From positions 914,301 to 978,300 of the forward strand of contig OZ287704.1 of the NCBI GenBank assembly GCA_965649825.1: 64,000 nt of DNA, written 5' to 3'. Position 1 is the stretch's first letter; each line of letters opens with the position of its first letter. This document shows positions 6,309 to 64,000 of this stretch, in pieces. This stretch comes from Penicillus capitatus (taxonomy: Eukaryota > Plantae > Chlorophyta). The notes below the pieces were generated by a model. It worked only from the letters and a program-made list of their open reading frames with translations, did not search any database and was not told the DNA's origin. The translations under genes and the position numbers were made by a program.

Positions 6309-6573
6309 TGGACAAGTTTCGCAGTTGCTCTTAGAGTGTGATGTGACAGCGCCAATCCAATTCTGCCTCAAGTGATTCGTTCGCCGTTACTTAGCGTTCG
6401 ACGTCCACGACTCGTAGAATCACTCACCATCACGTACGTTCGTTTCTTCGTTCACGCTCAAAGTAATGTCACTTCTGTTGATAGTATCGACTTCAGCGCC
6501 CTTTTCATTTGCGTATAGACCTTGTTCTACTGCACGTGCGCCTTTGTTTTTGGTGTGCAGCTGCGTTGGGGTT

Positions 6574-43806: not shown

Positions 43807-44665
43807 TCAGGGCGTCTCGGCGTCAGATGATGATCCAAACTGCCCGGCATCGCCCAGTTCTCTCAGATTCTCTAATTGTGTTTTCTTTTCGTCAAGGAGA
43901 GTCAGCAATCTCTCCGTCTGTTGATTGACGAAGGCTGTCTCGCGGCGAAACAGTTCGTCCAGTTCGCCATCGTCCTCCTGTCCCGGACTGTCGCGGGTGA
44001 CTGGAGTCTCGGCCCGTCTCTCGACATTCATCTGCGGCAGACTGCAGCGAGGACATGTGTTCTCTAGCCAATCGAATGCTTACGAGAATCCGGCAACCTG
44101 TAGCTTCCGCTCAGCTTCATTGCGTTCCGTCTCGTCTGCCTCCGACAGTTCCTCGTTATCAAAAACCTCCCACACTTTCTCCTCCAGTCCCCTCGGGTCA
44201 CCAAGGTAGGGATAGACGTCCTGAGTAAACCAGCCAACCCCCAATGCACATCTCATAGATCTGAAGAATGCATGATAGCATTACCGTCAGCATATCGTCC
44301 AGTACTTCACGCGCCTCTTGAGCCAATTCTTTGGCCAGACGGTACTTCAGAATGGACACTTCCATGCCTCTCTTTATCGCTTCTAAATCTGATGTCTTCC
44401 AATCCTTGCAATCCTGCGCGATGTAACGCAGGTGATATATCTGCGCAGTCCGTCGCTCTTGTTCACCGCACAGTAGCGCACTGGACGACGGTACTTTGTC
44501 TTGGAGCATCTTCTTTCGCTGCTCGAGGTATTTCTTAAATGCCGGTGTCAACAGCAGACGATGGTAACGCCGTTCGCCTTCGAGTTTCTAAATATGGTCT
44601 GTCTCAAATGGTCACCAAGGCACATGGATTACTTCTCTGCGCTCGAGCAGGCGTGTACTCGACAT
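43807..44665 (-). CDS. Hypothetical coiled-coil protein, multi-exon
   Basis: Chain of ORFs joinable by GT-AG introns (MSSTRLLERRE|KLEGERRYHRLLLTPAFKKYLEQRKK ... LDELFRRETAFVNQQTERLLTLLDEKKTQLENL). Confidence 0.5.
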
Positions 44666-44792
44666 GTTTTTGACGATGGACCGTCAACGGGTACGGATCA
44701 AAGGTGGTTCAGAAACACATCTGCCAATTGCGACACAGTACATCAGCTTCTTGCAAATACGTTCACAATGCATCTTTTAGCGTTCGAGTGAC

Positions 44793-46684
44793 TCAGCGTG
44801 TTAAAACGTGGCGTTTCTTATGGATGTCGTGCCCGGACACGGCTGAAGTTGACAGTCGACTGCGACGGTAGCGCATATGGACCACATCTGCCATCTCGTT
44901 CAGCACCTGCGTCGCACATTATCCAGGGAAAGGGAAGAATTGAACGGACCTCGAGTCCATAGTCGAGATCCTCATCGGTATGGGAGGCCGAAATACAGAT
45001 GCGTGCTCGAGCTGTTGTCAATGTCGTTGCCGGAAATCCAACGACGACGACGGCCACATTTCGCTCAAAACACTCTCTGGATAGCAGTGGCACCTTGGCC
45101 GGGGCGTAGAGCATGATCGGCTGCAAAAGGTGTCTGAATTGGTGGAGATGATGGGATGGATGGCTGCTTACGATTACGGGTGAATCCCAATCGCCCAGTG
45201 TTGTTAGACCCATTTCCATAAGCTTCTGTCGAAAGTAATTGGCATTCCGATGCAACGTCCTTATCTTCTCAATTCCTCGCTGCGTTCCATCCTCTCCTCT
45301 CAACAATCTGTCGCACACCACGGAGAGATTGCTGGTAACGTATGTGCGCTGATCACTTGAAGGCGCTCAAGATCTGTTCGACGGCCGGAGGCGACATCGA
45401 TGCGGCATAGTGCTGCGTTGGACATCTCCTTTTCAAGTAATGGATGATGTGACTTGAGCCGCCGATGTAGCCGCCACATGACCCGAAGGATTTGGTGAAG
45501 GTGCCCATCATGATGTCGACATTGCGGGGATCGACACCCAGTTGTTCACAGATGCCCTTTCCCGATTTGCCGAGAGCGCCGATACTGTGCGCCTCATCGA
45601 GATACAGATACGCCTTGTATTTCTTCTTGAGCTCCATGATCTCCTTCAGGCGACACATTTCGCCCTCCATACTGTAAATGCCCTCGACAATGATCAAAAT
45701 CTAAAGAATCCGTGATGGAGTGTCATCTGAGCGTATGTCTACATGGGGAGACCTTCTTCCATGGACGGTGTGTTCGTGGTTGTCCCTCAGCGATCTTTGC
45801 TCTCATGACATCTTCCAAGTGTCGCACATCGTTGTGACGAAAGACGTGCACTTTGGCACCCGATCCGCGAACGCCAGTCACAATGGAAGAGTGATTTAGG
45901 GCATCGCTCATAACCAGACAGCCCTTGCCAACGAGGGCCGGGATCACGAAAGAATTGACAGCAAAGCCCATTCCGTATGTCATGGCACTCTCGACGCCAA
46001 TAAACTCGGCCACCATCTCCTCCAGCTCACGATGGATCTTAAGCGTTCCTAATGAAGCACACATTCCTTCAGTAAACACACACGTGTTAAGCACCCACCT
46101 GTCTGCGATCGTGAACTGCATGTTCCCCATCCCCAACGATCGAGGGTGTCCAACACCCGAGGCGTACAGTAAGCATCCGACGACGCGAATCCGAGATAGT
46201 TGTAAGATCCCAGATTTAAACAGGGTCGTGAAGCGCCTGTCAATTCCAACGTCCTGCATAAAGACATAGCGACGCTGCAAAGGTTGGCAGGTGTCTTCCA
46301 CTCGATCTCACTGTTCGCCACGCGCAGCTCTTCTTTCGAGCACGTTGATCCATGACGTGGGGGCACTGTTTATTGGGCGATTCCAGAGATCCTGTTGTCA
46401 GTACAGCATCCGCAACGATATAGTGAGGAGGTGACAACTGACATGCATACGCAGATAGACGCGCCGGACATAGAAATCTTCATAGTCTTGCTTAATCGGT
46501 GCATATCCCTGCAGAATCACACAACCACCGGTGGGCTCTTTCTCGTGTATCGGACCGGTTGTGCATGGAGACGTGAGAAATGATTGCGGAAGAAGTCGCG
46601 GATGTGTCCAAGGAGGAATAGAAACATCCAACTGAGGTAAGTGAACAAACCGACCAGCACTGGCGGACGCTCGTCTTCCATCAT
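44793..46684 (-). CDS. LCB2: Serine palmitoyltransferase subunit LCB2
   Basis: [58 protein letters not shown]-lysine motif GTFTKSFG. Confidence 0.95.
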
Positions 46685-46746
46685 GAGACGCGAAAGCAAA
46701 ATGACAAGGATGGATAGTCGTCATACGGTCATTCTCAACGGCGACG

Positions 46747-49163
46747 ATGGAAACGAATGGCGTCGCCGGTTCGTCGCGAAAGGACACGGAAGTGCGCCTT
46801 CCTCGAACGACTCGAGTCAAAGACAAGCGACCAGCGGAACGTCAAATCACAGCAGAGCAGATTCTGCGCACGGCCAAGGAACTGCAATTGGAGGATGACG
46901 TCAAACCGCCTCGTCAGATCATTACTGCACCGGGAGAGCTGCGCACGTATAAACTCCGCAAAAGACGTGAATTCGAAGACCTCATTCGGCGCGTTGGGCG
47001 CTTTAATGTGAGCTGTTGGTTCAAGTAAGATCATACATTGTGTGAGATAAGAGATAGAGTGAGAAGCGTGATGCGGTGCTGCTTAGGTATGCTCAATGGG
47101 AAGAAGCACAACGCGATTTTCGTCGTGCTCGGTCGGTCTGGGAACGATGCCTGGATGTGACCTACACAAATGTCTCCGTCTGGTTGAGATATGCTGAAAT
47201 GGAGATGCGGAATCGCTTCATCAATCATGCACGGAATGTATGGGATCGTGCCGTGAGTCTCCTGCCAAGAGTGGATCAGCTATGGTACAAGTACATTCAT
47301 ATGGAAGAGATGCTGGGCAATGTGGCGGGTGCCCGACAAGTCTTCGATCGATGGATGGCTTTTGAGCCAGACCACGAAGGATGGAATGCCTACATTCGTT
47401 TCGAACTGCGTTATGAGGAGGTGGAGAAAGCGCGGGATGTCTTTGAGCGTTACGTCCAGATTCTGCCAGAGGTGAAGTCCTGGGTCCTCTATGCCAAATT
47501 CGAGATGAAGCATGGAGAAGTGTCCCGTGCCAGACAGTGCTACGAACGTGCGATCGAAGCGCTCGGAGAGGATGGCGAAACGGAAGAGCTCTTCTTGCGG
47601 TTTGCAGAATTTGAAGAAATGGTGAAGGAATATGATCGAGCTCGTGTGATTTACCAGTTGCTGGCTCTCAGTCTGATCTTGTCTAACAACTGAATGCTCT
47701 TAGGTTTGCTCTGGATCGACTGCCCAAATCTCAAATTGAACGAGTGTACCAGAAGTTTCTCGCCTTTGAGAGGAAACACGGAGCCAAAGACAGCATCGAG
47801 AATGCAGTTTTCAGCAAGAGACGTGTAACTTACGAAGATCAAGTCAAGACCAATCCTTTGAACTACGACGCCTGGTTTGATTACATTCGTTTGGAGCTCA
47901 GCGCCGGTGGGGGCAGATCTGTGCGAGAATGATAGAGTCATTGTTTTTTTTGCCAGGCGATGTTGAGAAGATTCGGGATGTGTTTGAGAGAGCGGTGTCG
48001 CATGTGCCGCCGGGAAATGAAAAACGGTTCTGGAAGCGCTATATCTACATATGGATCAATTACGCTCTGTTCGAGGAGCTCGAGACGAAAGACGTGGAAC
48101 GAACACGCGCTGTCTATCGTGCCTGCCTGGATCTGATCCCCCATCAGCACTTTACGTTTGCCAAGATCTGGATATTGGCGGCGTATTTCGAAATTCGTCA
48201 ACATCAACTGGACGCGGCGAGAAAGCTCTTGGGCATGGCGATCGGCATGGCACCGAAGGAAAAGATTTTCAAGACGTACATCGACGTGGAGCTCATGCTC
48301 GGCAACATCGATCGGTAGCTACTGCTCCCGTGTGAGAGACGGTTGGCGGCATTCCAGAGTTGTCTGTGTGTAGATGTCGAACGTTGTATGGAAAACTTCT
48401 GGAATGGAATCCATCCAACTGCAACGCCTGGTGTCGTTTCACAGAACTGGAACGATCCTTGCAAGAAGACGATCGTGCCCGAGCCATATTCGAACTGGCG
48501 ATTTCGCAGCCACTTCTGGACATGCCAGAGCTTCTGTGGAAATCCTACATCGATTTCGAAATCGAAAACGGTGAGATCTCCATCTGCTTTGCCCGATACA
48601 ATGTGGCACTGTCTGCAGGTAATCGACATCGGACACGCGTTCTCTATGAACGGTTGCTGGATCGAACAAACCATGTGAAAGTCTGGATGAGTTTCGCGCA
48701 GTTTGAAGCAACGACATTCCCCGATGCCGAAGACGATGATGAAGAGGCGGAATCTGATGCCGAGCGACTCAAACGCGCGCGTTCCATCTATCGCCGCGGA
48801 TTCTGTTCCATTCGTGAGACGCAGCCCGATGCCAAAGATGAAGCCGTTCTGCTTCTGGGCGCCTGGAAGAAATTCGAAGAAGAAACAGAATTATCCCCGT
48901 ATACCTCACACCGCATCTCACTCTTTCTGATCCGTGAATTTGTGGTTCTCAGTTCTGAGGAGGAACGGGAGAAGGCAGTGGCAGATGTCGCGAAGAAATT
49001 CCCCAAGAAGGTCAAAAAGAAGCGGGCCATCTACACAGACGAAGGCATTGAGGCTGGCATGGAGGAATACTATGACTACATCTTTGCCGACGAAGCAGGG
49101 GCAGCTCCCAATCTCAAATTACTCGAAATGGCGCAGAAATGGAAGAAACGTAAAACGGAGTAG
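46747..49163 (+). CDS. CRNKL1: Crooked-neck / CLF1 / SYF3 HAT-repeat splicing factor
   Basis: [17 protein letters not shown], many HAT repeats ([38 protein letters not shown]), C-terminal EEYYDYIF...[12 protein letters not shown]. Confidence 0.97.
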
Positions 49164-49584
49164 ATGAGAGATTCCACGACGATTCTGTCGACGATGCGAG
49201 ACCGAACGAACATACTCTCTCACGGTCGTACGTACGCACATCTATCTATCTGCGTACATTGTGCCAGAATCCGATGAAACGGCATCTGCACGACGTTTCT
49301 GCCATTCCTCCGTCCGTAACTCTATCGAAACGGCGCGACGCCATCGCTCCCTCTCAAACAGGACACGTGGCTTTCGACATCGTTCCCCGCCGACGACGCA
49401 TCTCAAGAAACTCAGGTGACCGATACATTCATTTCCTCTCGGCTGCGTCTTTGCGTCGTTTGGGCGTCTCTTCGCGACCCCGCCGCTTTTAAATTGACTT
49501 TCGTGCAAATGGCGATTGGCGTGTAGGTTTTCGTTTTGTCAAGCGTCTAGCGCGTTTATTGAGTGACGTGACGTGTGTTGCGCC

Positions 49585-51374
49585 ATGTCGTCGATCAAGA
49601 AACGCAGTCCACGACGTTCGACGCCACGCGGTCGGATCACCAAAGTTCCATGTCCATCCAAGACGCCACGCCGCCGTCCTTACTGGATGCGAAGCGATCC
49701 GTGTCCCAGTCCCATCATGACGCGTATCTTCCGAGTCACCCCAGCGAAGCGTCGTCCCCTCTATCCTCACACCATCCACGCCGATCGTCTCATCCCTTTC
49801 CGACCCGACAACACACTCGACGCCGCAAACCGACGTCAAGAGGCGCTCGACACGCTGCGCGAAATCTCGGACTCCAAGAAAGTGCGATCCGACGTTGCCT
49901 CTACTGGCGGCGGTCTATGCTGGTATGGATTCAGGGAGATAGTGTAACCACTTACTACACCACAGCCTTGCAAGGAGAGATTCTGAATGCGCCACTGCGT
50001 GTGAAGGTCGACAGAGAACGAGCCGTTCTTCAGGCGTTACCCGATCGTCTGTTTCTGCATTTCTCTCGACCTATGAATCAACCGACCCATTCTGACCAGC
50101 AACTCGCGACGCATCCACTTCAACGCGGAAAACTGAGCAGAGCTCTCGATAGGCACGGCGAGTTCTCAGCATCCGAACGCGTCATTGCCAAAGCGCCTTA
50201 CAAAGTACAGTCCGTCCACGCACGACACATGCCGCCCTCAAATGGCTTCGCTTTAGATTTTGGACGCTCCTGACTTGAAAGATGACTTCTATTACAATTT
50301 ATTAGACTGGTCTTCCAAGAACGTATTAGCTGTGGGATTGGGATGTGCTGTATATTTATGGACAGCCACAACTGGACATGTCGAAGACGTGAATGCCGAA
50401 GATCGAGCACGTGGAGAAGTGAGCTCCGTGGCGTGGAGTCAAGGCGCCTCTGCTTTGGCAGTGGGCAGTCGAATCGGAACCCTTCAGCTCTGGGATCCTC
50501 ATACAAAGCAACGTATTATCACTTTCCTTGAACAGGCCAATCGCGTCGGCAGTCTCAGTTGGAATTTGAATAAACTGGCAAGTGGCTGTCGAAATGGAAA
50601 TATCCAGTACTTTGATCATCGATGCCGCAATGCCGTCCGTGTGATCAGTGGACATCGATCTGAAGTCTGTGGCCTCAAAGTACGTACGGCCACCGTACAC
50701 ATAGTTGAGATCGACGTGTTGGATCGTGTGCTCAGTGGTCGAGTGATAACCTCCACTTGGCTTCGGGAGGAAACGACAACCGTGTGAATATCTGGGACAT
50801 TCGCAGAACGGAGAGGCCAATATGGCAGATCACAGAACACACGGCCGCTGTCAAGGCCATCTCTTGGTCACCGCACAACAACAAGCACTTTGTTACCGGC
50901 GGCGGACTGAAGGACGTCCACATCAAGTACGCCCTTAGCGAGAGCGTCCGTGCACGAATATGACGGAATGCCTTATGTACAGAATGTGGAATCTCAATAC
51001 GATGGAGCGTGACATGGATGTCAATGCTTATGCTCAGGTTTGCGGTCTGCATTGGTCTCAGAATGCCAATGAGATTGTGAGCACACATGGATACAATAGC
51101 AACTGTATACAACTCTGGAAGGCGCCAACCATGGAATGCCTCGGAACGTTTCCAGGTCATGCCACCCGTGTGGTCTATCTCGCCGCTTCACCGGATGGGC
51201 AATCCATCGCGACAGGATCAGGTTATGACACGTCACTCGAGTGGCACACGTGTGAGTTGTGTATGGGGTGTAGGTGATGAGAGTGTCCGTTTCTTTAAAG
51301 TCTTTCCTCCCGTCAGTCGTCAGAGAGACATCCGAAGGGCTCAACGAGACAGAGTCAATCTATCTGTGCGCTAG
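49585..51374 (+). CDS. APC/C co-activator, CDH1/FZR/CCS52-like WD40 protein (divergent)
   Basis: C-box DRLIPFR, RVIAKAPYK|VLDAPDLKDDFYYNLLDWS, GHRSEVCGLK, ASGGNDN, HTAAVKAISWSPH, C-terminal VR tail. Confidence 0.9.
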
Positions 51375-51669
51375 AGACTATGTCTCCTGTACATATTGGT
51401 ACTAATGACAAGACATTTCATGATTTGAGAAACACCTGCAAACATGAAATCTTGTTCGCGAAAAAGCAGGCATCTGTGACGCAGCTCCTGCAGAATGATC
51501 ATATTCTGATGGCGTCGACATCTGCCATGTGTCAATCGCAGGGAGTCGCGGGGATGGCTGAGATGCGCCGTCGATCTAGGGCTGCGCAATCGACGTCACC
51601 GTGTGGCGACGCTTTTGATAAGACGTGAACGAGACAAGCATGGCAAACGACGATATCACGTCACTTCAA

Positions 51670-52800
51670 ATGACGCCGCTCTTGTCGACTTTCGGCAGCC
51701 GTCGTTGCAGCAGCGTTCGCTGCTCAAGTCCGTGGCACTTAGCCAGGGCCTCGTCCCTTCGATTCTTCCGTCAGTTCCGCTCCTCAAATCGTCCAGTCAT
51801 GAGCCTCGACCAACACATTCTCACTAAAACCGACGAGGAGAAGGAGGTCCTGTTCGTATCCGACCTGCGTTTGTGATGGATCTCCTGCTCCGATAGAAAA
51901 ATTTGATGGATCAAGTGCATCGTGCTCGATATGATTTCATGTTAGACTATCTGCGCTTTCCTCCTCTTCAAACACGTGTCGCCGGTGTCTCATTCGAAGA
52001 CCGCCAAGTTAGATTGTGTGACTTCTCACTCTTTTGTAGTCGTTTCTCTTTATAGTCTATATTGGAGGAGGTGATGTCTGGCGATGCCGTGATTTTGGAG
52101 AGGGAGCCGCACAATACGCATGATCCTGAGGCAGTGAGGGTTCTGTTACTCGATGGTCGGCACCTGGGCTACATCCCACGAGATCTGACGTCGAATTTTG
52201 GCGAGTTGACAACAGTGGGCCGTGTGAAGTCTGTGGGAATAGGTGAGGGTGGCTACTATGGAGCACAGATCGCTGTTCAGCCTCAACTACCGGCCTTGCT
52301 ACCGGCTTTCTTTCCTCATTCTCTCTCCCTTTTTGCCTATCCGTTTGATGGATATCGAGAGGAGCAGTTGGACAAAATCGTGCAGTTTTTGAAGACCAAA
52401 GAAAACAAGACCTGTGCTGTGACGGGAAGGGAGGGGCCCCTTTGTCCATATCTCTTTTGGAGAGTCCATTTGAATCGAAAACAATACGAACTCAGCGGGA
52501 TCCGTTTGATCCACGCCGATCTCGCCCCGGTCGGACAAATGCAGAACGCCGAGGATGAAAATCTCATGCAACTCTTGGCTGCTGTCAATGGGTACTGGTC
52601 TCACACTTCAGACAAAAGTGTGACATCTGGTTCGGTGTAGATGGACAAGAGAAGAGGCAGAAATGTACGTGCAGGGCTGCTTGGAGAGAAGAGACGCTGA
52701 TGACAGCGGCGAATGGATTGCCCGTTCTGTGGGTCTGCGTAATCTGCTGAACGATTTAAGTCTTCCTTTGCCACCTGCAATGAAAATTAAATCTGCGTAG
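51670..52800 (+). CDS. HIRAN-domain protein with putative organellar transit peptide and degenerate HNH-like C-terminus
   Basis: TRVAGVSFEDRQ|...LEREPHNTHDPEAVRV...LGYIPR (HIRAN); upstream Arg/Ser-rich exon; last exon WTREEAEMY...PAMKIKSA* after a GT-AG intron. Confidence 0.8.
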
Positions 52801-52894
52801 AGACACACGGCAGAAAATTGTGTCGTGTGTCTTTTTCATGGCATCTTTTCTTGTGCCCTTGTCAAGACAGATATCCGCATCTCGTGGATCTGTT

Positions 52895-53501
52895 TTATTT
52901 TCCGTGGAGAGCTTCAGTGTCCTGCTCTGTGACAGACGGCAGGGCAATTTTCATGCGCCGGTTAGAGACGAGGGGCTGTGTTCCCTTTCTTTTTTTGTTC
53001 CCCTGTTGACAAGTCATCCTTGTATCCACTTAAACAGTTACTTTCTGTTGTGTCTTTATCAAAGGGCAGACAGGACTTAAAACAAGAGTGAGGATTTCCT
53101 CGTGTAGAAAAATATCAGAGAAAATCATGTCATCTCTCCTGATTGTCTTCAGGCTGCTGTCTAAGAGGGGCGATATTGTGCTGTGCTTCCTTTCAGGAGC
53201 AACGAGCCAAGTATCGACAGAGACGGTGATATTCTCGCGAGCGATTCCCTTAGACGTGTCTCTAAAACTCATCCCACGATCAAAGGACCTCCTCACCTTT
53301 ACAGAATGGCCATCGGCGGCTTTTCACGTGACGTGTATACAGAGAAAGCTCTTGCAGAGTCGTTTCAGCGAAGATCCTGCTATGTATCATCGATACTCTC
53401 GGTAGGGTGAGACATGACGTGCGAAAACAGCGTTTGGTGTCAGGTGACGCCTTCCTTGCCCGACCGAACACTGTCGATGGATTCGATGCCCTGGCTGTCA
53501 T
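52895..53501 (-). CDS. Possible small multi-exon gene of unknown function
   Basis: ORF pieces 53280-53501 and 53030-53296 plus a last exon, with good donors (gtgagg, gtaact); I could not make the frames and start fully consistent. Confidence 0.25.
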
Positions 53502-53670
53502 TGACGAGTCGTCGCCATTCTTCCTTGCCTGAATTTATCGCATATCGTAGGGGGGCCAGAAGAACGGCAGCGGTCGCTGAACGTCGCACTCCGACATTGA
53601 GAAATGGACGACACAATATAGAATGCGTGATCAGATGACGTCACCTTGACGTTCTTATGAAGATGAAACC

Positions 53671-54010
53671 TGTTGGGAATCGAATGTAAGAGTGGTTCAG
53701 ACGATAGTCGAGTCCTTGCGCGTTGAGACGACGGAAACGCAATCAGATTTGGTGTGATATGAATAGGAGTTATTACAAGGTGAATTGTCGACCTTATATA
53801 CCCAGGGTGGTTATGGACTTCCTAACCTTACGTCCTAACAGCTGCGAACTCCTAGTGCATGCAGCATAACCATACCCCTTACGTTATGGGGAAGTTAGGT
53901 CGGGAGCCGACATCCGTCGCGACCGATGGTCGGCGCGCCTGGATGGTTATGTGACGGCTCCACCGCTTCCGGTGGTTACACAGATGACAGTTAGAGGTTC
54001 ATTTCCTACA
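53671..54010 (-). repeat. 3' LTR (340 bp)
   Basis: tgttgggaat...atttcctaca; identical by eye to 58575-58914; imperfect terminal inverted repeat (8/10). Confidence 0.98.
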
Positions 54011-54014
54011 GTGA

Positions 54015-54027
54015 CTCCTCCTCACTT
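54015..54027 (-). other. Polypurine tract (AAGTGAGGAGGAG on the minus strand)
   Basis: Purine-rich tract 4 nt before the 3' LTR in element orientation. Confidence 0.75.
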
Positions 54028-54117
54028 AACACGTCACGTCCCGACGTTTAAGTGACACAGAATGAACAAAACACACACACAGGTAAAGGGTAGAACCATT
54101 TGAGCGTTATGAAGACT

Positions 54118-57100
54118 TTATTGGGGAGCGATCCACGGCTTCACGCAGAACTGCGGTACTCTCTTCATACGGCCATCGACCAGAACTCTGCAAGCTCCTT
54201 GGTTACCCCACCACGTCACGACACCTTTCTCGAACGCCGTTTCAAGTTTCCCGTGGTCTTCAAGTCGATAGACGCGGACCTCTTCCCCAGGCTTGATGCG
54301 TGGAAGCGCGGTTTCCGCGGTCCATGACTCGCGGATCTTCTTCGCGGAGTCACGAAAACGCTCGCGACAAAGCGCAAGATCGGTCAGACGGTCTGCAAGG
54401 GCGGTCTGCAAGGGCTCTGCATCCCCTTTGCTCTCGCCGGCTAACAGATTCACTTCAGTGCGGCTTTTCGGCACGACCCCTGTGAGAAGTTCGAGTGGCG
54501 ACAGGAACTTGCCTCGTCGTGCGTTCACAGCAAACGTCGCAGCCGGGAGGTTCTCGTCCCAGCTTCTCGGGTTCTGGCACTTCCTCAGGCGGTCAAGGAC
54601 GAGGCGCTGTACGTTCTCGACTTTGCCATGGCTGCGGGGGTATCGTGGCGTCGACCATCGATGCTCGATCCTGAGATTCTTCACCGTCTCGCTAAAAACA
54701 CCCTGGAACTCCGTCCCGTTGTCCGTCAGGATTCTCTGCGGCACGCCCCAAGCGCAAACGACTTTATTGATAAAGAACTTGAGGGTCTTTGCAGCTCCCA
54801 AGGACGTCAATGCATCTGTTATTACGAATCCTGTGAAGCAGTCGATCGCCGTGACGAATCCTACTGCCTTCCTCGGCGTCGCCGGCAAGCCGACAACCGT
54901 GTCCAACTCGACCAGCTCCCATGGTTCTTCGATGGCAATGGGGATAGTGCTACGGATGGGGGGCTTGGAACCGAACAACTGGCAGGTTTGGCAGGTCTTT
55001 ACGAGGTCTTGTACTTGCTTGCGCATCTTCGGAAACCAGTACCGGTGTCTGACGCGCTGCAGAGTTATTTCAGCGGAGAAGTGTCCGAGGCAATGTTCCT
55101 CGGAGATCACCGCGCGGACTTGGTTCGGCAGCAGACAAAGCTTGCGCCGTCCATCTAAGTCTTCAAAGAAAAGATTGCGCTCACCCCATCGAAATCGACT
55201 GTCCGGTTCGTTGACCGAGGGGAGGATCTCCGCGTACTCGCGGCAGGCTTGGAAAGCGGCAGCAACGTCTTCGGCAACGAGCGCTGGACATTCATCGCAT
55301 TCCTCTTCTTTATTGACTGGTCGAGGTTCCGAATCTTCATCGACCAGGCGACTCAGTCCATCAGCGTTGCGGTGTCTTTCTCCGGGCCTCGTCACAAAAT
55401 GGACGTCGTACTCGGACAAGATGAGCTTCCAACGGGCAATACGACCCGTCAGGTCTGTTTTGCGCAGCATATGTGACAATGCTGCATGGTCGGTTCGAGC
55501 GACCACCTTGCGTCCTAAGACATAGACGCGAAATTTTTTGAGTCCGGCAACCAATGCCAATCCTTCTCGCTCGGTGGCTGAGTATCGTGTCTCAGCATCC
55601 TTTAGGAGTCTGGAGTAGAAGTAGATCGGACGCTCTTCCCCGTCTTGCTCCTGTGACAAAACGGCCCCGATTCCGTAAGCGCTGGCATCCGTGTCGACGA
55701 GAAATGGCAGGTCTTCGTTGACTGCCGCCAAAACCGCTCCGTCGACAAGGAGCTTCTTCAACTCCTCCAGTGCCTTTTGGGCGTCGGGAGTCCACAAGAA
55801 GTCTCGTCGTGTCGAAAGGAGGCTTGACATTGGCGCACTTACGCCCGAAAAGTTCTTCAGGAAGCGGCGATAATAGGAGAACATGCCGTAAAGAGATTGC
55901 AGTTGTTTTCTGTCCGTCGGCGAGGGCATCCTTGAGATTTTCTCAACTTTGGCTTCATCCATTCTCATCCCTTCTGGGCACAGCCGGTGGCCAAGGAAGT
56001 CGACTTCTCGGTAGCCAATAAAGCACTTCTTCGGCTTCAACCTGAGTCCTCCGTCGCGACAACGCGTGAACACACGTCGCAAGTCTTCCACGATACCAGC
56101 TTCATTCTGGTGCGCGCAGCAGACGTCGTCAATAAAGACGCCGACTCGGTCCAGTCCGCCATAGACCTGTTCGACCAAACGAGAGTAGGCAGCCGGACCG
56201 TTTGTTACTCCAAAGGGGAGGACAAGCCAGCAGTAGACACCGAAGCTTGTGGCGAAGGCCGTCTTTAATACGGATTCAGGATGCAGACCAAGGGAATAAT
56301 ATCCGCTGAACCCGTCGAGGGCCGAGTACCACGCGTGACCCATGACGCGGTCCAACAGGTCGTCCGCCCGTGGCAGCACGAACTTGTCTGGAATGGTGGC
56401 GTCGTTGAGGCGCTGGTACGCACAACAGAATCGAAAGGTACCATCTTCCTTCGGCGCGATGGTGATTGGCGAAAGCCAACGATCCTTGCGTTTTGGGCAG
56501 CCATATTTTCTCGCGGCCTCTTCCCACGGGATGATTAGCTGGGCTTCAAGCAGCTCGTCGATTTGTGCCTTGACGAACTCAGTTTCTTTTGGCGCCAGGC
56601 GTCGTGTCCGGCCACAGCGCTTCGCGACTTCTCCTTGACGCAACTCGATTTCAAATTGCATGAGCGGTGTTCTGACCATGTCTTGAAAGGTCAGGGCAAA
56701 ACAGTCTTCGTTTTCCATAATTAACGAGCGGACATTTGAAATCACCTCAGGCTTCAAATCAGGGCTTATGTGAATGTCATCAAACACTTGGTCACTCAGG
56801 GCCATGAAACACTCTTCCTCCGAGTCATCATCACTGCAGAGGGCGCGCATTTGCTCGAGCAACTCCTCCAGATCCGCCTCCATGTCAGATTCGCTCTGAG
56901 CTTCGGACACGTCGTCTGCGACCGGTTCCGGTTGAATGAAGATCTTCCGTCCCTTGGGAAGAACCGTTATGCGCTTTGCGAGGCCAATGGTGTAGGTGCC
57001 GTCTTCGAAATTGGCTCGGGCGCGAACGGCGCGCAGCCAATCCATGCCCAACAAAACGTCATAAGAGTTCCTGGCGTTCAGGACGTTGAACGCCTGTTGC

Positions 57101-58521
57101 ACGGCAACACCTCCGACGTCGGCCCGTACTTCTTCCGTGCGACCCAATGGCTTCTGCATGGTCCCATCTGCCAGGAGGAGGTTACCTCGGCTTGGTGTTG
57201 CAAAGCGAATGCGTTCGCGCTTTGCGAAGTTACTGTCGAGGATAGACTGAGTCGAGCCGGGGTCAATAATTACTTTGTTAGCAAACCGACAGGCGACAAA
57301 CACCTTGCAACGGTTCTCTTCCGGTTTCCCTTGTCGAGCAAGGGCCACTTGTTGCTCTGGTTCTGGTACTTGTCTTGGGGCGACTTCGGGCTCCATTTCT
57401 ACGTCGACTTGTGGTAGCGCAGAAGCCGAGGGTTGGTTTGCACTGGCCTTCTGCTTCCTTGGCTTTGGCGTGAAACCGAACGCATCTCTCAGCGCCAGTA
57501 TCACCTGCGAGTACACTTCGCGCTTGCTGCGTCCTTTCAGGAAACGCAGAGGAATGGCCCATGCTTGCGCAGCATAGTCCGCCCATTCACGGTCAAGTTC
57601 AGGTTTCTTGCGCGGCTTTCGCGCTTTCTTTCCTGGCGCGCCTCGGCGCCGTTTGCTGGGTTGGTTTTCTTCTTCGTCCGCCATCCTGGCGGCAGTCTCG
57701 CTGTCTTCGTCTTCAGACATCGACTCCACGAAGCGGGAAGCATTCGCTTCTGCGCGTCTTGCGCGTCGCTTCTCCTGCTTTTTCGCAAGCAGGCTTGTGA
57801 GTCCGGTTATGAGTTGGCGAAGTTCTTCGTCTTCTGAATCATCCGCTGCCGGTTCCTCAGCAACGACGGTTGTCGTTTTTCGCCCTGACTTCGCAAGGCG
57901 ACGGGCTCCATGCTCCCTGAGGACCGTCTGGCGGTTTGTGTTTTCTGGTCTGGGTTCTGGTTCGTCTTCTTCTTCGTCGGTCTCCTCGTACCCTCGGACA
58001 TTCTTGCGCGCCTCCGTTGCGTACTTGGCATAGCGAACGGCATACTCAAAAGTCGGCGCGTTGTTGCTTGCAGCGAGCCGAGTGAACGCGTACTCTGCTG
58101 CGCGGTCATTTTGGAGGCCCCTCAGCCAGTACTTGTAGTAATCGTCCGGGTCGACGGCAGGCTGAGCTCTAGAACACATCAAGGCGAAGCGCTCAGCGTA
58201 CGCGACCAAGGATTCTCGTCGCTTCTGGAAGATGTGTCTGAGCTGGTCTCTGGCGCGGTCAGGGTCCTGGTCGCGAACAAAACGGTCAGTCAACAGTTGA
58301 CTCCATTCAGCCCAATCGATATCCAGATGGGCGTCGGCGTCATGGTGCAGTTCCGCCCAATCCGCAGCTGGTCCGTCAAGCAACGCGACTGCAATTTCGG
58401 CTCGCGTTCCGGGCTGGTCCTCTATTTGCTGCAGGCGGAAGAGCGAGGTCATCTTGCTGACCCATCTCCTAGGGTCAGTGCGTCCATCGTAACGCGGAAA
58501 AGAGATCGACTCAATGCGCAT
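54118..58521 (-). CDS. Gag-Pol polyprotein (1467 aa, one frame)
   Basis: Gag (FPRYDG..DPRRW), protease IIDPGS, RT (DGTFRFCCAYQRLN, LPFGVTNGPA, FIDD), RNase H (DTDASAYGIG, EGLALV, TDH, ADGLSR), integrase HHCC plus D,D(35)E (LDTV, TDNG, KVENV). No CCHC knuckle or chromodomain seen. Confidence 0.98.
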   Translation of the reverse strand: MRIESISFPRYDGRTDPRRWVSKMTSLFRLQQIEDQPGTRAEIAVALLDGPAADWAELHHDADAHLDIDWAEWSQLLTDRFVRDQDPDRARDQLRHIFQKRRESLVAYAERFALMCSRAQPAVDPDDYYKYWLRGLQNDRAAEYAFTRLAASNNAPTFEYAVRYAKYATEARKNVRGYEETDEEEDEPEPRPENTNRQTVLREHGARRLAKSGRKTTTVVAEEPAADDSEDEELRQLITGLTSLLAKKQEKRRARRAEANASRFVESMSEDEDSETAARMADEEENQPSKRRRGAPGKKARKPRKKPELDREWADYAAQAWAIPLRFLKGRSKREVYSQVILALRDAFGFTPKPRKQKASANQPSASALPQVDVEMEPEVAPRQVPEPEQQVALARQGKPEENRCKVFVACRFANKVIIDPGSTQSILDSNFAKRERIRFATPSRGNLLLADGTMQKPLGRTEEVRADVGGVAVQQAFNVLNARNSYDVLLGMDWLRAVRARANFEDGTYTIGLAKRITVLPKGRKIFIQPEPVADDVSEAQSESDMEADLEELLEQMRALCSDDDSEEECFMALSDQVFDDIHISPDLKPEVISNVRSLIMENEDCFALTFQDMVRTPLMQFEIELRQGEVAKRCGRTRRLAPKETEFVKAQIDELLEAQLIIPWEEAARKYGCPKRKDRWLSPITIAPKEDGTFRFCCAYQRLNDATIPDKFVLPRADDLLDRVMGHAWYSALDGFSGYYSLGLHPESVLKTAFATSFGVYCWLVLPFGVTNGPAAYSRLVEQVYGGLDRVGVFIDDVCCAHQNEAGIVEDLRRVFTRCRDGGLRLKPKKCFIGYREVDFLGHRLCPEGMRMDEAKVEKISRMPSPTDRKQLQSLYGMFSYYRRFLKNFSGVSAPMSSLLSTRRDFLWTPDAQKALEELKKLLVDGAVLAAVNEDLPFLVDTDASAYGIGAVLSQEQDGEERPIYFYSRLLKDAETRYSATEREGLALVAGLKKFRVYVLGRKVVARTDHAALSHMLRKTDLTGRIARWKLILSEYDVHFVTRPGERHRNADGLSRLVDEDSEPRPVNKEEECDECPALVAEDVAAAFQACREYAEILPSVNEPDSRFRWGERNLFFEDLDGRRKLCLLPNQVRAVISEEHCLGHFSAEITLQRVRHRYWFPKMRKQVQDLVKTCQTCQLFGSKPPIRSTIPIAIEEPWELVELDTVVGLPATPRKAVGFVTAIDCFTGFVITDALTSLGAAKTLKFFINKVVCAWGVPQRILTDNGTEFQGVFSETVKNLRIEHRWSTPRYPRSHGKVENVQRLVLDRLRKCQNPRSWDENLPAATFAVNARRGKFLSPLELLTGVVPKSRTEVNLLAGESKGDAEPLQTALADRLTDLALCRERFRDSAKKIRESWTAETALPRIKPGEEVRVYRLEDHGKLETAFEKGVVTWWGNQGACRVLVDGRMKRVPQFCVKPWIAPQ

Positions 58522-58556
58522 GGCTTGTCAGAGACGATAGAAAACGCTCGACAGTG

Positions 58557-58572
58557 CCCCGGAGGTCCACCA
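58557..58572 (-). other. Primer-binding site, complementary to a tRNA 3' end CCCCGGAGGTCCACCA (tRNA-Ala-like)
   Basis: TGGTGGACCTCCGGGG starts 2 nt inside the 5' LTR boundary; the implied tRNA ends U70-C71-C72-A73-CCA. Confidence 0.75.
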
Positions 58573-58574
58573 GA

Positions 58575-58914
58575 TGTTGGGAATCGAATGTAAGAGTGGT
58601 TCAGACGATAGTCGAGTCCTTGCGCGTTGAGACGACGGAAACGCAATCAGATTTGGTGTGATATGAATAGGAGTTATTACAAGGTGAATTGTCGACCTTA
58701 TATACCCAGGGTGGTTATGGACTTCCTAACCTTACGTCCTAACAGCTGCGAACTCCTAGTGCATGCAGCATAACCATACCCCTTACGTTATGGGGAAGTT
58801 AGGTCGGGAGCCGACATCCGTCGCGACCGATGGTCGGCGCGCCTGGATGGTTATGTGACGGCTCCACCGCTTCCGGTGGTTACACAGATGACAGTTAGAG
58901 GTTCATTTCCTACA
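58575..58914 (-). repeat. 5' LTR (340 bp)
   Basis: Copy of 53671-54010; contains palindromic TATATA at 58699-58704. Confidence 0.98.
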
Positions 58915-59674
58915 AAACCGGTAGCGACAAAGGGAGGAGGTACCACTCGCAACGGGCAGGCCATTTGGCCGTGCACTCGGACGTGGACTGTTCACGCACG
59001 TACACGGACATCGTGTTGGCGACGTGGGTCAGCCTTAGGGACAGTGATGTGTTGAGTACGAGTGCATCGTGTCAGGAAATCGACGCGTTTGCTGCGGCAA
59101 TGTCACAGACGGAGCGGAAACAACGGTGAGTATCCTATCCCCCGTCCAGAGAATAATGATCCAATGAGACAGAGTTTTCCGGGAAAGGGTGGTCTGCGAT
59201 ATGAGAAGCTTTTGTTGGGCATTGCCGATTCGAACCCATACTTATCGGAAGGGTCACGTCAGGCAAAGATCCCCTCTGATGGTTCTGAATGGACGAGACG
59301 TGCTCCTTCAGGCCCTGACGACAATCGCCAAATTGGCAACGAATTATCAAAGTAAATTGACCATCGTGGTGATCGATGAAGCAAGCAAAGAGAAAGAGGA
59401 TGTTCGATTCGATACCATGACCAAGTCACAATCTCACTCTTCTGTCACATCACACCTGAGATCACGTTGCAGGGAACTGCACAGTATGGGATGTACAGAT
59501 TTCAGTGTCTTCACCAAGGATCGTTCTCAGCAGCCATCTGTTACCTTGGGCGACGTAGCTGACGAAATTGAAGCAGACTTGATGGTGTTGAGTTCCGATG
59601 CTGTGCATGAGAAGAGTGTCGATGCCAATCTCTTGGCAGAGTTCATGCCGTGTCCTGTTTTGATTTTGCCCTGA
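58888..59674 (+). CDS. Universal-stress-protein-like (adenine nucleotide alpha hydrolase fold) plastid protein; original start apparently separated by the retrotransposon
   Basis: LLLGIADSNPYLSEGSRQ|ALTTIAKLA..KLTIVVIDE..LGDVADEIEADLMVLSSDAVHEKSVDANLLAEFMPCPVLILP*, resembling a conserved plant plastid USP-like family; upstream transit-like exons; GC-AG intron at 59263-59311. Confidence 0.85.
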
Positions 59675-59757
59675 ATTTTGAGACAGAGGTCGTCACACTT
59701 GCTTTTTTCGTTACAGTTGCGTACAGGAGCCCCATGGTTAACGAATGAGCATTTCTG

Positions 59758-62700
59758 TTAGCTCAAATGAAATCCAGTTTTGGAGGAGATAGCGTAGAGA
59801 AGCTTTTGTTTCATGGCCTCCTTTGAGGCATAGGGTGGCAACTTCAGTAAATTCACACATGTGGCGCTCGTTGGCAATCTCCCCGTTGCATGATCGTTCA
59901 AGACATTCCCTGCCATTTGGATGCACATCCTCGGCTGCAACTGCTCGAATCCAAGGAGGGGTGCCCGCGAGCATCCGGTGACAAACTTGAGGAAATGTCT
60001 CTGCTCTTCAGCAGTGAGACCTTCAAGAATTTCCCAGAAAGAAATGATGACAGGGTGCTCTTCGTGATAGCCTCCGGCATAATGGGCAAAGCGTCTCATA
60101 TTGGATATGTCCAATCCTTGAGAAGAGCCCGAAATCAGCATTCTTAGCTCCATGGCATTAAACATCTGCACCCATTCTCGGTGAATCACATCGAAAAAGC
60201 CACAGAGAAAGGCATTGGACGTGGCGCTGACTTCCCTATTGAGTCGGTAATCGGCAAAACGGTGGGTGTAGTTCACGACATTCTGCTGCGTGACCAGGGT
60301 CTGAGCTCCATTTGGCTGCAATTCAATCTCTGCGTTTTGACCGTAGACGTTGTCTGTGATGGTGAAATGTAGACCCAGGGCATCCAGATTCTCCTGGCGC
60401 CGAAGCTGCATGAGATTCGTATAGACATCGAGGTCCAAACTTGGCAAGTCATGCAAATCACACAACTGTCCTCGGAACTTCTTCAGAAAGAAATGTGCAA
60501 AGGGCAGCTCCAGAAGAATGCCATCGTACACCGCCTTCCCTATGAACAGCCTTTGTCAATCGTCGGATGTGACAGCAGATAACAGTACCCATCATGCGTC
60601 CCAGGAAATTGATGATCTGCAATGCTCTGGGCTGAAGAACGACGGCAGACGGATTGGGATAGAGCTCTTGCTGTTCAGTTGCGGCAAAGAATCCATAGTC
60701 TGAGTCGAAGCCCTTCTTGGCAAGCTCCTCAATGAAATCCTTGAACAGACCGCCGCCATCCACGCCGGCTTCCACCATCCCATGCTCATCCACGAATTCA
60801 ACCCGCAACCGGCCTTTTAGATCTGCCCCTTTCAGATTCCCCAGTGCCTCGAAGCCGTCTTCCAGGAGTAGCAGACGACGGACGTTTGCATGGACAGGTG
60901 GAGCAGAAAAGCCCATGTTGGCTGACTGGAATCGTTTTTTGTCTGCATCGATGTGGGATTGAAAGATCCTTGCTCGGTCTCGAAAAGGGATCAGGCAGGA
61001 GGCGTGGTTGAGCAGCACGGGAGCACGGTGATTCACGGCCGGCATTTCTTCGTCCTCATCTGGATGGATGGGCTGAGACGACGCTTCCTTCACAAACTGA
61101 CTCAATTGTGCACTCTGGATTTGGAAATGCTCGGATGGAACCAAGTCCCATCGAGTTAAGTTATCGTGCAATTGCACCAGCAATCTTCCGCAGATTCTGG
61201 GAAACTGTGACATCATTGTCGAATGCAACGTGTGACTGTCGGTCGTGGAAGGCCCAGGTGTTCGGATCCATCCCACACACCACATGCATTTCTTCAAAAC
61301 GGTGATGAGTCCTTTCTCGGGGCACATTGGATCATATATCTCTTGTAGCGTTAACGGAATCTGTTGCTGAGTAATGTCTTCTTTGGTGGCGACGCTGAGA
61401 AAGGCGCTGTAGATTTGACAGATGACTAAGATAGGTGCCAAGAGACTGTCGACGAGGGGCGGTTCTGGAAAAGCCAGCCTCGATACAGTCCATGACCTTT
61501 GGATACACTGACGCCATAATCGCTCAATCAGTCTGGCAGAAAGGGCGAAGGACAGAATCATTCCATTCAGTTGATTGGCATTCTTTGCTGTACAGATCAT
61601 GAAATACAGCAACTCGCAGAAAGACGATGCTGTCTGCCCGTCCAATTCTCCATCGGAGAAGAGCGCCTCTGTCAAAGATCGGATCAAAAACTGGTCTTGA
61701 CTCCCGTGCAGTTTCTCAACAGCTCCTTGCAGATGGACTGACGGTCGGAACCGCGGAAATACGTGCTGCGAAGCAGAAAGCCATTCATCACTGGCCATTT
61801 CGTTTTCATCATCATGCTCTACGACGTGGAGGTCTTGTTGAATCACCCAAATCATGAAGCGACTCATCCACACGGCCAGAGAACGCAACTGAGCAGGACT
61901 GTTCTCCAGTCTACGAGACAGAGATTTCGGCAGGAGGTCAAGGAGATTGACGAAAACTGTCAAACAGGACTGGTTAAAATCGCCAGTCGCCATGTCTATT
62001 CTGGTCGCAACAGCTGCCGGATTCTGGATGGACAGAATCTGCTCGATAAAAGGCAGAAAATGCAGTAATATGGGTTGCGCTTGAGGGATAAGCGACGGAC
62101 AGAAGGATGACAGAGACGGCAAAGCCAATAATCGAAAGGCGCCCAAAGCCGATATCCATCTCCCCTGTGCCACGCGTGCGACAAGATCCAACGTCGTTGT
62201 CACCATTCGCTCCAACAGTGTTCCTTGTATGGAGCTGCAGAGTTTTGCATCAAGCGCCCTTTGCAATACTCGAGCGAGTATCGAGAGGATGGCCCTCCGC
62301 ATGAGATGCTCTGCCAAGCTCAATCTCCTGCCGTCACTGCTCTCGAGAGATTGATTTCTCCCGTGGGTACACAGCACCGTCATCATGAACCATACGATGC
62401 TTCCTCCGTCATTCGACTCTCTTGAGGCGGCATCTCCCGGAGGTCGCAGTAGACACGGGAAATCAATTAGACGATGTTCTAAGATCCGAAAACCCTTCTC
62501 TACGGCCATTGCTATTAAATCCAAAAACCCGTCCCGGAAGCTTCTTCTGATTTCTTCCGCTGTCGGAACAACCCTAGTCACAACGGAAAGGCTATGAGCA
62601 TCGGATGTTACGTTCGTTCTGGACGATGGAGATCAAGACATGACACACGACGGCGAAGCAAGAAATGTCATCGGATGATCCCACGTCGATGAAGAAGACG

Positions 62701-63038
62701 ATTCTCGAAACGTGATTCCATGTGAAGCTCCCTCGATGAAAACCCTCTCCTCTGCTGCCAAATTCTTCATACCATTGTCGACGGAGTTCGTTCCGGAAAT
62801 TGCGACGGAATAGCCGCGACCGATATGCATTCTACGTAGTGCTTTGCGTCTTTTTCTGCCTTCTGTCCGAAACGCATACCTGAATCTTTATGGCTGAGGC
62901 ATTCTCCAACTGTAGCCTTCTTCGCGTTTCTCTCTCGCGTTTGAGACGCGCTAGTGTCTCTTCGCGTGATGCTTCTTTCCGACTGCGTCCGCCCAAATGG
63001 ACGGGTCGTTTCGATCGGTGGTCACCGGGAAACATCAT
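59758..63038 (-). CDS. UPL6: HECT E3 ubiquitin ligase, UPL6/UBE3C-like
   Basis: MMFPGDHRSKRPVHLGGRSRKE plus IQ motif; HECT EAGVDGGGLFKDF, FLKFVTGCSRAPLLGF, catalytic RLPTSATCVNLLKLP. Confidence 0.93.
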
Positions 63039-63407
63039 GGTGGTTGTAATGAAGACGAAGCTCCGTGCGTTCGTGCTGTATTTTGCTTCTCATTTACAGA
63101 CTATGTACGTCATGCAGCGAATGACCAGCCAATGATTATTGCAAACACCAGAAGCAAAAAACAAAACGGATTACCTTCGAGGGCAACAGAACATTTGATC
63201 TTCTTGTTCTTTATCTCTCTTACGATTATCATTTCAGAGATCCATTTCTTAGGAATTCGCTCGAGATGAGTCTCGTCTTGTAGATAAGAGATCGATGGAT
63301 TCACCGGCAATCTCCTATACCGAAAGTTTCTTTACTGTTACTTCTCACTGGAGCAGCGAGACCATGTCGTTAAGCCTGTGAATAGATCTTAGTCTACTCT
63401 TTGGCAT

Positions 63408-63950
63408 TCACGGAGACGATAACGTGTCTCCGATGTTCAATGTGCTCGTATGCAGATTCAGATGGAGGGACCGTGCTGCTAAGTTGAATGACAAGGACAC
63501 AGTGGAGCATCCCGAGGCATGCTGCTGTGCCTCCTCGGACAGGTCATTTTTTTCATCTAATCGTTTTCTACGTCCCATCACGATGAACATTAGAACGACG
63601 ACGCCATTTGAAAGCGAACATACACACGTTTTGTCGAGTCCGTTCTCCGTCTCTGTCACCGATTCGCACCGATCGTTCGTTACGTCAAATTCGCGATGAC
63701 GTTCGGAAGTAGCGGAGGACGCGAGTACTTCTACGACAACGAAACGATGCATCTCTTGGAGGATTTGCGCGGTTTCTATGGTGGGCGCGATTATTCGCAC
63801 ACATGCACCAAAGCGCTGAGACTTTTCAGTCTCCATCTCCAGCCCGTCGTCGACGTTTTCCTCCAGAAGGACTTGGGCGACTCCCGAACTTTTGTCGTCA
63901 AAGCGAAACCGTGGACAGAGAAGGATTTCGTATCGTTGCTTCCAAAACAC
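63408..63950 (-). CDS. Possible hypothetical protein (may extend beyond the right edge)
   Basis: 180-codon ORF with a plausible in-frame intron; no motif recognised. Confidence 0.3.
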   Translation of the reverse strand: MFWKQRYEILLCPRFRFDDKSSGVAQVLLEENVDDGLEMETEKSQRFGACVRIIAPTIETAQILQEMHRFVVVEVLASSATSERHREFDVTNDRCESVTETENGLDKTCVCSLSNGVVVLMFIVMGRRKRLDEKNDLSEEAQQHASGCSTVSLSFNLAARSLHLNLHTSTLNIGDTLSSP

Positions 63951-64000
63951 GTTCGTTCGTTTACGAATGGCGATTGGCGATTGGCCGAGTACTTTAAACG

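Follow-up and report, generated by a model that had tools for sequence, protein, structure and literature searches.

A Ty3/gypsy-type LTR retrotransposon lies antisense in the first codons of a conserved nuclear gene, predicted to encode a USP-fold protein, within the 64,000-nucleotide stretch of DNA analysed here (the window). The insertion is very recent and still polymorphic. We put at about 0.8 the probability of the whole reading set out below, in which this recent antisense insertion has most likely produced a null or strong hypomorph and the ATG that the LTR places in frame with the host coding sequence is fortuitous.

The initial annotation had placed a retrotransposon in the opening codons of a host gene, and the LTRs, the target duplication (TSD) and the empty alleles agree that the insertion is there and that the gene is real and conserved. 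The element does lie within the proposed interval 53657-59130, but those limits were wrong: it is intact, measures 5,244 bp and runs from 53671 to 58914. The open reading frame, primer-binding site (PBS) and polypurine tract (PPT) place it on the minus strand, antisense to the plus-strand host gene, an orientation fixed by the conservation of PBS and PPT in five copies and overlooked in that annotation. The element and its borders comprise:

53666-53670, no strand: left TSD copy, AAACC, present once in empty alleles
53671-54010, minus strand: 3′ LTR, 340 bp, oriented by ORF, PBS and PPT
54011-54027, minus strand: PPT, sense AAGTGAGGAGGAGTCAC, abutting the 3′ LTR and kept in 5 of 5 copies examined
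54118-58521, minus strand: single, intact gag-pol ORF of 1,467 aa, with Pfam domains in Ty3/gypsy order
58557-58572, minus strand: PBS, sense TGGTGGACCTCCGGGG, kept in 5 of 5 copies examined
58575-58914, minus strand: 5′ LTR, adjoining the host gene body, assigned by LTR identity and PBS/PPT orientation
58696-58704, minus strand: LTR TATA box, TATATAAGG in element sense (LTR positions 211-219); the plus strand reads CCTTATATA
58888-58914, plus strand: antisense ORF start in the LTR, ATG ACA GTT AGA GGT TCA TTT CCT ACA, by translation
58915-58919, no strand: right TSD copy, AAACC, matching the left copy

The two 340-bp LTRs are identical at 340/340 positions (100%) and end in TG...CA, the plus strand reading TGTTGG...CCTACA; a 30-nt LTR probe is expected to give 0.00 chance matches. 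The 5-bp TSD is perfect on both sides. The PBS begins 2 nt after the 5′ LTR, and scans for its primer tRNA in the window and eight loci gave no tRNA genes. The gag-pol ORF has no internal stop and encodes, in order, gag (Pfam match at residues 43-137), aspartic protease (416-497), RT (RVT_1, 690-847, with the motif FIDDV), RNase H (RT_RNaseH, 910-1038) and an integrase with a zinc-binding domain (Integrase_H2C2, 1134-1183) and core (rve, 1199-1295). Unlike in Ty1/copia, the integrase is thus last in pol (PR-RT-RNase H-IN). Domain order, TG...CA LTRs, 5-bp TSD, PBS and PPT are all shared with green-algal Ty3/gypsy elements (Metaviridae). The element differs from Ty3/gypsy relatives in having no detected chromodomain past the integrase: the 1,467-aa protein gave no Chromo match at E ≤ 0.001, the feature that would have marked a chromovirus.

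Removal of the element and one TSD yields ATGAAGATGAAACCGGTAGCGACA, which translates as MKMKPVATKGG..., reproducing the empty site that the initial annotation had reconstructed. A natural empty allele was also found. Locus L003, a near-identical haplotype, reads CTTATGAAAATGAAACCGGTAGTGACAAAG at this site; its flanks are 99.6-99.8% identical to those of the filled allele and meet at a single AAACC, with collinearity over 9.6 kb on one flank and 5.1 kb on the other. Fragmented gene calls had hinted at a lesion of a HECT gene in this empty allele, a possibility rejected when the proteins proved identical. L002 and L004, from a sister taxon about 88% identical, are likewise empty, each with AAACC once.

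Comparison of these loci gave a nuclear gene of five exons, with an intact gene model at all four loci compared:

53620-53656, plus strand: promoter-proximal/5′UTR block with a palindrome, TGACGTCA, at 53636-53643, conserved with the sister taxon in a four-way alignment
53657-53670, plus strand: orphaned first 14 nt of the CDS, ATG AAG ATG AAA CC, from alignment with L002, L003 and L004
58920-59023, plus strand: remainder of exon 1, a transit-peptide-like leader, with conserved frame and conserved donor GTGGGT
59076-59125, plus strand: exon 2, NRRVCCGNVTDGAETT, resembling the leader of orthologue P0003, RIRRLHCSKTEETG
59173-59262, plus strand: exon 3, SFPGKGGLRYEKLLLGIADSNPYLSEGSRQ, from orthologue alignment, its junctions confirmed by the intron-less contig L010
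59312-59424, plus strand: exon 4, preceded by a conserved 49-nt GC-AG intron, from orthologues and L010
59473-59674, plus strand: exon 5 with the stop codon, ending ...VDANLLAEFMPCPVLILP, from orthologue comparison

Upstream of the 53620-53656 block, the intergenic DNA can be aligned only in part with the sister taxon. The remainder of exon 1 differs from L002 and L004 by one in-frame 3-nt indel, and in L009, a more distant relative, exon 1 ends HWRRR. As for the introns, the initial annotation had correctly called 59024-59075 (52 nt, phase 1), but the intron it ended at 59167 extends over 59126-59172 (47 nt), and two more, 59263-59311 and 59425-59472, had been missed. GT-AG choices for the third intron were rejected, as only the GC-AG pair yields the orthologous ...EGSRQAL... 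junction, in agreement with L010.

The initial annotation had asked whether the native start might lie downstream of 58920. L002, L003 and L004 all retain ATG 53663, the only conserved ATG, whereas ATG 53657 is confined to this species (L003 has ATGAAAATGAAACC; L002 and L004 have GTAAAAATGAAACC). Conservation thus assigns the native start to ATG 53663, upstream of the insertion, which places the insertion in codon 3, after CDS nucleotide 8 (ATG AAA CC/G, within ATG AAG ATG AAA CC/G GTA...; the slash marks the junction). A downstream start at ATG 59100 (MSQTERKQ...) was considered and rejected. The sister taxon reads GTG in place of this ATG and has a TAA in frame, and P0003 and L010 both agree with the alternative frame of exon 2.

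Assembly can go astray at identical repeats, and a full copy 100% identical to the element (L001) exists at another locus in a related assembly, so the element might have been misplaced into this locus during assembly. We find this scarcely credible. The perfect 5-bp TSD stands exactly where the empty alleles hold a single AAACC, and therefore indicates integrase-mediated insertion and not a mis-join; both flanks, moreover, are collinear with L003 over the 9.6 and 5.1 kb given above.

The element is an autonomous member of an active transposon family. Six near-identical variants of its polyprotein were found, and each of the further copies examined (L001, L005, L006 and L007) carries a 5-bp TSD and a pair of LTRs that differ by 0-2 mismatches. 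One of these copies, L005, interrupts an open frame of 416 codons, for which Pfam gave no match. Elsewhere in the window, no solo LTRs or diverged copies of the element were found. Three observations mark the insertion as very young: the two LTRs do not differ, an exact copy is present at another locus, and the empty allele shows 99.7% identity. Together, the filled, natural empty and outgroup sites document a genic insertion polymorphism arising from an active LTR retrotransposon family in a green alga, placed no more finely than in the Chlorophyta, and the insertion can serve as a marker that transposition is still going on.

In the mechanism that we propose, an autonomous Ty3/gypsy-type element integrated antisense in codon 3, duplicating AAACC. 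The native ATG and the conserved block next to the promoter now stand 5.25 kb from the rest of the gene. In the filled allele, the frame from 53657 translates as MKMKPVGNRM and stops inside the LTR; transcripts from the host promoter would encode just this peptide and then run antisense into the element. Because promoter and ATG are separated from the gene body and such transcripts would encode only MKMKPVGNRM, the filled allele is likely to be a null or strong hypomorph. Expression from it is most likely lost, and it is most likely a segregating null or hypomorphic allele beside an intact one. Some low-level rescue may occur, since nothing in the gene body past the insertion is damaged and translation from the LTR ATG would yield a protein close to normal.

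One route to rescue would be a host-promoter transcript that spans the element, from which the element is spliced out as one huge intron or else skipped, to leave a near-native mRNA. Upstream, the host promoter and its ATG are undamaged, and a GT is available at the left junction (CC/TGTTGG), but no AG is found at the right junction or close to it (…TTTCCTACA/AAACC), and the locus has no precedent for a 5.2-kb intron, its own introns being only 47-52 nt long. The first stop follows 10 codons past the ATG. On the plus strand, TGTAA, the usual chlorophyte poly(A) signal, occurs 15 nt inside the LTR. Such read-through is very improbable.

The initial annotation had instead proposed that LTR-derived sequences take over as promoter and start of the gene. 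Part of its evidence was reproduced. ATG 58888, on the plus strand, reads MTVRGSFPT and continues as KPVATKGG... in frame with the host CDS and without a stop, and the spliced product would be identical to the native one except for MTVRGSFPT in place of MKM. The palindromic TATATA described as lying about 185 nt upstream is at 58699, 184 nt before the ATG. The promoter claim itself is unsupported: since the gene-side LTR is the 5′ LTR of an antisense element, the LTR promoter, with its sense TATA TATATAAGG, points away from the gene. Exaptation, even in an early stage as had been suggested, likewise finds no support in a young, polymorphic insertion that is missing from the sister taxon and displays no sign of selection. 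Retention by selection would be expected of an exapted element; here the site is empty in a 99.7%-identical haplotype and at both sister-taxon loci, and the LTRs show 0 differences. Nor does an LTR promoter face the host gene, element and gene being on opposite strands, minus and plus respectively.

The gene could still be driven from the LTR if the U3 end of the 5′ LTR held a cryptic antisense promoter, with plus-strand transcripts that use ATG 58888, are spliced normally and yield a functional plastid USP-like protein. Besides the open, in-frame ATG and the otherwise native product, this idea can draw on the palindromic form of TATATA and on the added residues, which like the native leader contain no acidic residues and are rich in hydroxylated ones. 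Antisense or LTR-initiated chimeric transcripts are, in addition, documented for other systems in PMC4908685, PMC6102241 and PMC4023170. We nevertheless consider it unlikely. The TATA fits the consensus better in the sense direction (TATATAAGG), and a transcript that started about 30 nt past it would retain all five ATGs found between TATATA and ATG 58888, including a uORF (58830-58898) that overlaps ATG 58888, itself in a weak context with C at −3. The ATG is also absent from related copies, the equivalent codon being CTG in the sister copy L007 and missing from L006. An exact-product look-up of the 55-aa unspliced ORF that starts at ATG 58888 (58888-59055) found no record in the protein collection, and selection has had no time to act on so young an insertion. 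Were this rescue real, peptides from the allele would begin MTVRGSFPTKPV, and LTR-initiated transcription here would show exaptation at its very first step, which is seldom seen. In a narrower version, transcription would start cryptically close to the end of the LTR, at about 58854-58887 and past all upstream AUGs, giving a spliced mRNA for a plastid-targeted MTVRGSFPT... protein. This we regard as quite unlikely, though it would amount to an observed ‘day-zero' example in which the gene struck by a transposon is rescued by that same insertion.

An in-frame ATG is, in any case, readily met with. One of six combinations of LTR end and frame supplies one, so that it is not improbable by chance and would be expected in about 1 in 6 insertions of this element; reading upstream from random window positions, a fraction of 0.42 meets an ATG before a stop. 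Judged from these comparisons, the LTR ATG is most likely a sequence coincidence, not an adaptation. The example corrects a reading that is tempting but overdrawn: an ATG of this kind at the end of a transposon counts for nothing unless orientation, conservation or transcripts support it.

A null or strongly hypomorphic allele beside an intact one has close parallels. Active LTR retrotransposons that cause insertional null alleles include Ty1 in yeast, Tos17 in rice and TOC1 in Chlamydomonas. As in those cases, a CDS has been hit by an autonomous element, with LTRs that do not differ and a 5-bp TSD, so that promoter and start are cut off, and the insertion is polymorphic, with an intact allele present; the insertion described here differs in lying unusually near the start codon (codon 3). 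Only an antisense promoter could allow an element in this orientation to drive the gene. The IAP at the agouti A-vy allele is an example of such a retroelement promoter. Others occur in human and mouse L1, as described in PMC4908685 and PMC3985663; the present family, by contrast, has no known or detectable antisense promoter, and its antisense leader is loaded with upstream AUGs. Transcription initiated in LTRs is treated in PMC6102241 (mouse oocyte LTR-initiated transcription units) and PMC4023170 (the Pu.2 LTR chimeric transcript). As there, host exons follow directly on the LTR, from which a first exon and an ATG could in principle come. In those systems, however, transcription from the LTR has been demonstrated, and the LTRs tend to be old and are in many cases fixed, whereas this LTR is antisense, brand new and polymorphic.

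The product predicted for the host gene has a USP fold, preceded by a leader of about 55 residues resembling a plastid transit peptide. Every orthologue compared (from Bryopsis, Tetradesmus and others) has an N-terminal leader, of 45-75 aa. Scores against the Pfam family PF00582 were 17-20 bits, below the gathering cut-off of 24, and 5 of 9 orthologues matched it weakly; by inspection the motif G-x2-G-x9-G-[ST], which marks the ATP-binding subclass of USPs, is absent from the C-terminal region (...MVLSSDAVHEKSVDANLLAEFMPCPVLILP). When PDB sequences were searched with a profile made from the aligned orthologues, the sole match was a spurious one to a designed protein, and a fold search was therefore needed. 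The fold was examined on orthologue P0003 (61% identical); its AF2 model shows a disordered leader followed by the alpha/beta USP fold with a domain pLDDT above 90. With this model, the top 34 Foldseek matches in the PDB were all USPs (E down to 1.4e-07, TM up to 0.77). The closest named relatives, from Bryopsis, Dunaliella and Haematococcus, are only 49-57% identical.

The gene is divided by a complete LTR retrotransposon with perfect target-site duplications.

Retrotransposon and its insertion site
53671-58914, minus strand: complete LTR retrotransposon, 5,244 bp
53671-54010 and 58575-58914: LTR pair, 340 bp each, identical at 340/340 positions, ends TG...CA
53666-53670 and 58915-58919: perfect 5-bp target-site duplication (TSD) AAACC, on both element flanks
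54118-58521, minus strand: uninterrupted single ORF of 1,467 aa, between the LTRs
2 nt past the 5' LTR, sense in minus orientation: TGG-initiated primer-binding site TGGTGGACCTCCGGGG
Directly ahead of the 3' LTR, element sense: purine tract AAGTGAGGAGGAGTCAC

The initial annotation had recognized a retrotransposon with LTR and TSD; its bounds (53657-59130) are revised here to 53671-58914. A 30-nt LTR probe gave exactly two matches in the window versus 0.00 expected. The Pfam domains of the ORF run gag, aspartic protease, reverse transcriptase, RNase H, integrase zinc domain and integrase core, an order that identifies the element as Ty3/gypsy type; no chromodomain was found in this ORF by Pfam. 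Primer-binding site and purine tract are kept in all family members examined and, since both lie with the ORF in minus-strand sense, the element is antisense to the host gene. Its G+C content (0.55-0.56 across window 54001-58000) exceeds that of the host DNA around it (0.46-0.53).

Three syntenic loci were reached by exact-product look-up. One (L003; ENA ERZ25074695, contig ctg340197) matches window 44030-53673 at 99.6% identity and 58915-64000 at 99.8%, and there both flanking segments join at one single AAACC, reading ...CTTATGAAAATGAAACCGGTAGTGACAAAG...; judged by its sequence, this locus is an empty-site allele that occurs naturally in the same species. The other two (L002 and L004, ERZ26696514), ~88% identical to the window and belonging to a sister taxon, are also empty. 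In the sister taxon, GTA replaces the window's first ATG (53657) and the second (53663) is kept. These comparisons identify ATG 53663 as the native start and place the integration directly behind nucleotide 8 of the CDS, within codon 3, as the proposed insertion into the first codons had it; the start kept in the empty loci lies upstream of the element, not downstream of 58920. ATG 59100 was also considered as native start and rejected, because the sister taxon has GTG there, followed by an in-frame TAA.

The gene model, derived with orthologues as guide, has five exons and a product of 190 aa.

Exons and introns of the host gene
53657/53663-53670 joined to 58920-59023, + strand: exon 1
59024-59075: intron 1, 52 nt
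59076-59125, + strand: exon 2
59126-59172: intron 2, 47 nt
59173-59262, + strand: exon 3
59263-59311: intron 3, 49 nt, GC-AG (donor GCAAAG)
59312-59424, + strand: exon 4
59425-59472: intron 4, 48 nt
59473-59674, + strand: exon 5

All four introns are only 47-52 nt long. Intron 1 agrees with one of the two placements proposed initially, intron 2 ends at 59172 instead of 59167, and introns 3 and 4 are additions. The model is open throughout in 4/4 loci; exon 1 differs between window and sister taxon by an in-frame 3-nt indel, every splice site is preserved, and the GC-AG intron 3 is kept in L003, L002 and L004. Introns 2-4 are missing from L010 (SRR28002515), a Logan contig of a relative with 66% identity, which is continuous across the predicted junctions; either this contig was assembled from RNA, out of overlapping convergent transcripts, or the relative has lost the introns.

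Homologues of the downstream ORF were confined to green algae in homology searches (Bryopsis sp., 49% identity; Tetradesmus obliquus, 46%; the EukProt orthologue P0003, 61%). In the alignment, every full-length orthologue begins with 45-75 residues of poorly conserved N-terminal leader, followed by a conserved core from ...L-x-Y-D/E-K-L-L-L-x-I-x-D-S-N-P-Y-L-S-x-G-S-R-Q-A... to ...VDANLLAEF-x-x-CP-V-L-L-x-P. Matches to Pfam Usp reach only 17-20 bits, under the cut-off of 24. The AlphaFold model of P0003 has 50 disordered residues followed by a confident alpha/beta domain, whose top 34 PDB matches are all universal stress proteins. The label 'USP-like', given earlier to these conserved exons, is therefore correct at fold level, the fold of the host protein being predicted through its orthologue P0003.

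A full copy at an unrelated locus (L001; ENA ERZ25074695 ctg340425, 2608-7851), with its own TSD AGAAC, is 100% identical to the window element over 5,244 bp. The 90% cluster of the polyprotein holds at least six near-identical members, all from assembly ERZ25074695. Together these imply current or very recent transposition. The four copies fetched besides the window element (L001, L005, L006 and L007) each have their own 5-bp TSD and 0-2 mismatches between LTRs. One of them (L005; ENA ERZ25074695 ctg339490, 2608-7850) divides a 416-codon open frame, restored on removing the element and one TSD (ACCGC). This frame resembles a multi-pass membrane protein gene and had no match in Pfam. On sequence evidence, the family is active now or was very recently, and does insert into genes.

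The initial annotation had proposed that the LTR exchanged the host promoter and start for its own, as possible early exaptation. An ATG at 58888 does stand in frame, encoding MTVRGSFPT and running into KPVATKGG... without a stop, and the composition of the leader that it opens is retained, acidic residues being absent ahead of position 57. It is the 5' LTR of the element that adjoins the gene body, with a TATA box (TATATAAGG) on the element sense strand at LTR positions 211-219, where the U3 promoter is expected; this promoter is predicted to point to lower coordinates, away from the host gene. If + strand transcription began ~30 nt past TATATA, the leader would contain ATGs at 58763, 58790, 58830, 58847 and 58853; the uORF 58830-58898 overlaps ATG 58888, which itself has C at -3. 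The antisense ATG is CTG in one family copy (L007) and absent in another (L006). When each LTR end is read in each phase, one of the six cases meets an ATG ahead of any stop, and so does a fraction of 0.42 of random window positions. Identical LTRs, the identical sister copy, an empty allele 99.7% identical and the empty sister taxon make the insertion so young that selection has had no time to act and has left no trace. Given orientation, upstream ATGs, lack of conservation, chance and age, we argue that the in-frame ATG is a coincidence. A host-promoter transcript of the filled allele would encode MKMKPVGNRM and then stop, and 15 nt inside the LTR it would reach TGTAA, which in chlorophytes usually serves as poly(A) signal. 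LTR-initiated rescue of the gene has a low probability; we read the feature instead, at a probability of about 0.8, as a recent loss-of-function insertion of an ordinary sort, still segregating and caused by an active Ty3/gypsy element. The initial sequence observation thus stands with a refined gene model, and its interpretation is only partly supported. The phenomenon is of a well-known kind; only the family to which the element belongs, and this one allele of a green alga, are new.

For neighbouring genes, the closest named relatives of this alga are Dunaliella and Haematococcus (54-57% identical).

Neighbouring genes
59758-62581, minus strand: UPL6-like HECT E3 ubiquitin ligase gene, convergent neighbour
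About 52074-52640, + strand: HIRAN-domain gene, upstream

The HECT and USP-like stop codons lie ~84 nt apart, which leaves room only for very short or overlapping 3' UTRs. L010 also holds the convergent HECT gene, and synteny of the pair is kept in L002-L004, L008 and L010. A perfect TGACGTCA palindrome (CRE/bZIP-type site; 53636-53643) precedes the first ATG by 14 nt. It sits in sequence that the sister taxon conserves, and probably serves the USP-like gene as a core regulatory element. In the 3' LTR (53671-54010), the sense promoter faces outward, towards the orphaned USP promoter and the 3' end of the HIRAN-domain gene; putative read-out antisense transcription of that gene would be a more conventional side effect to seek.
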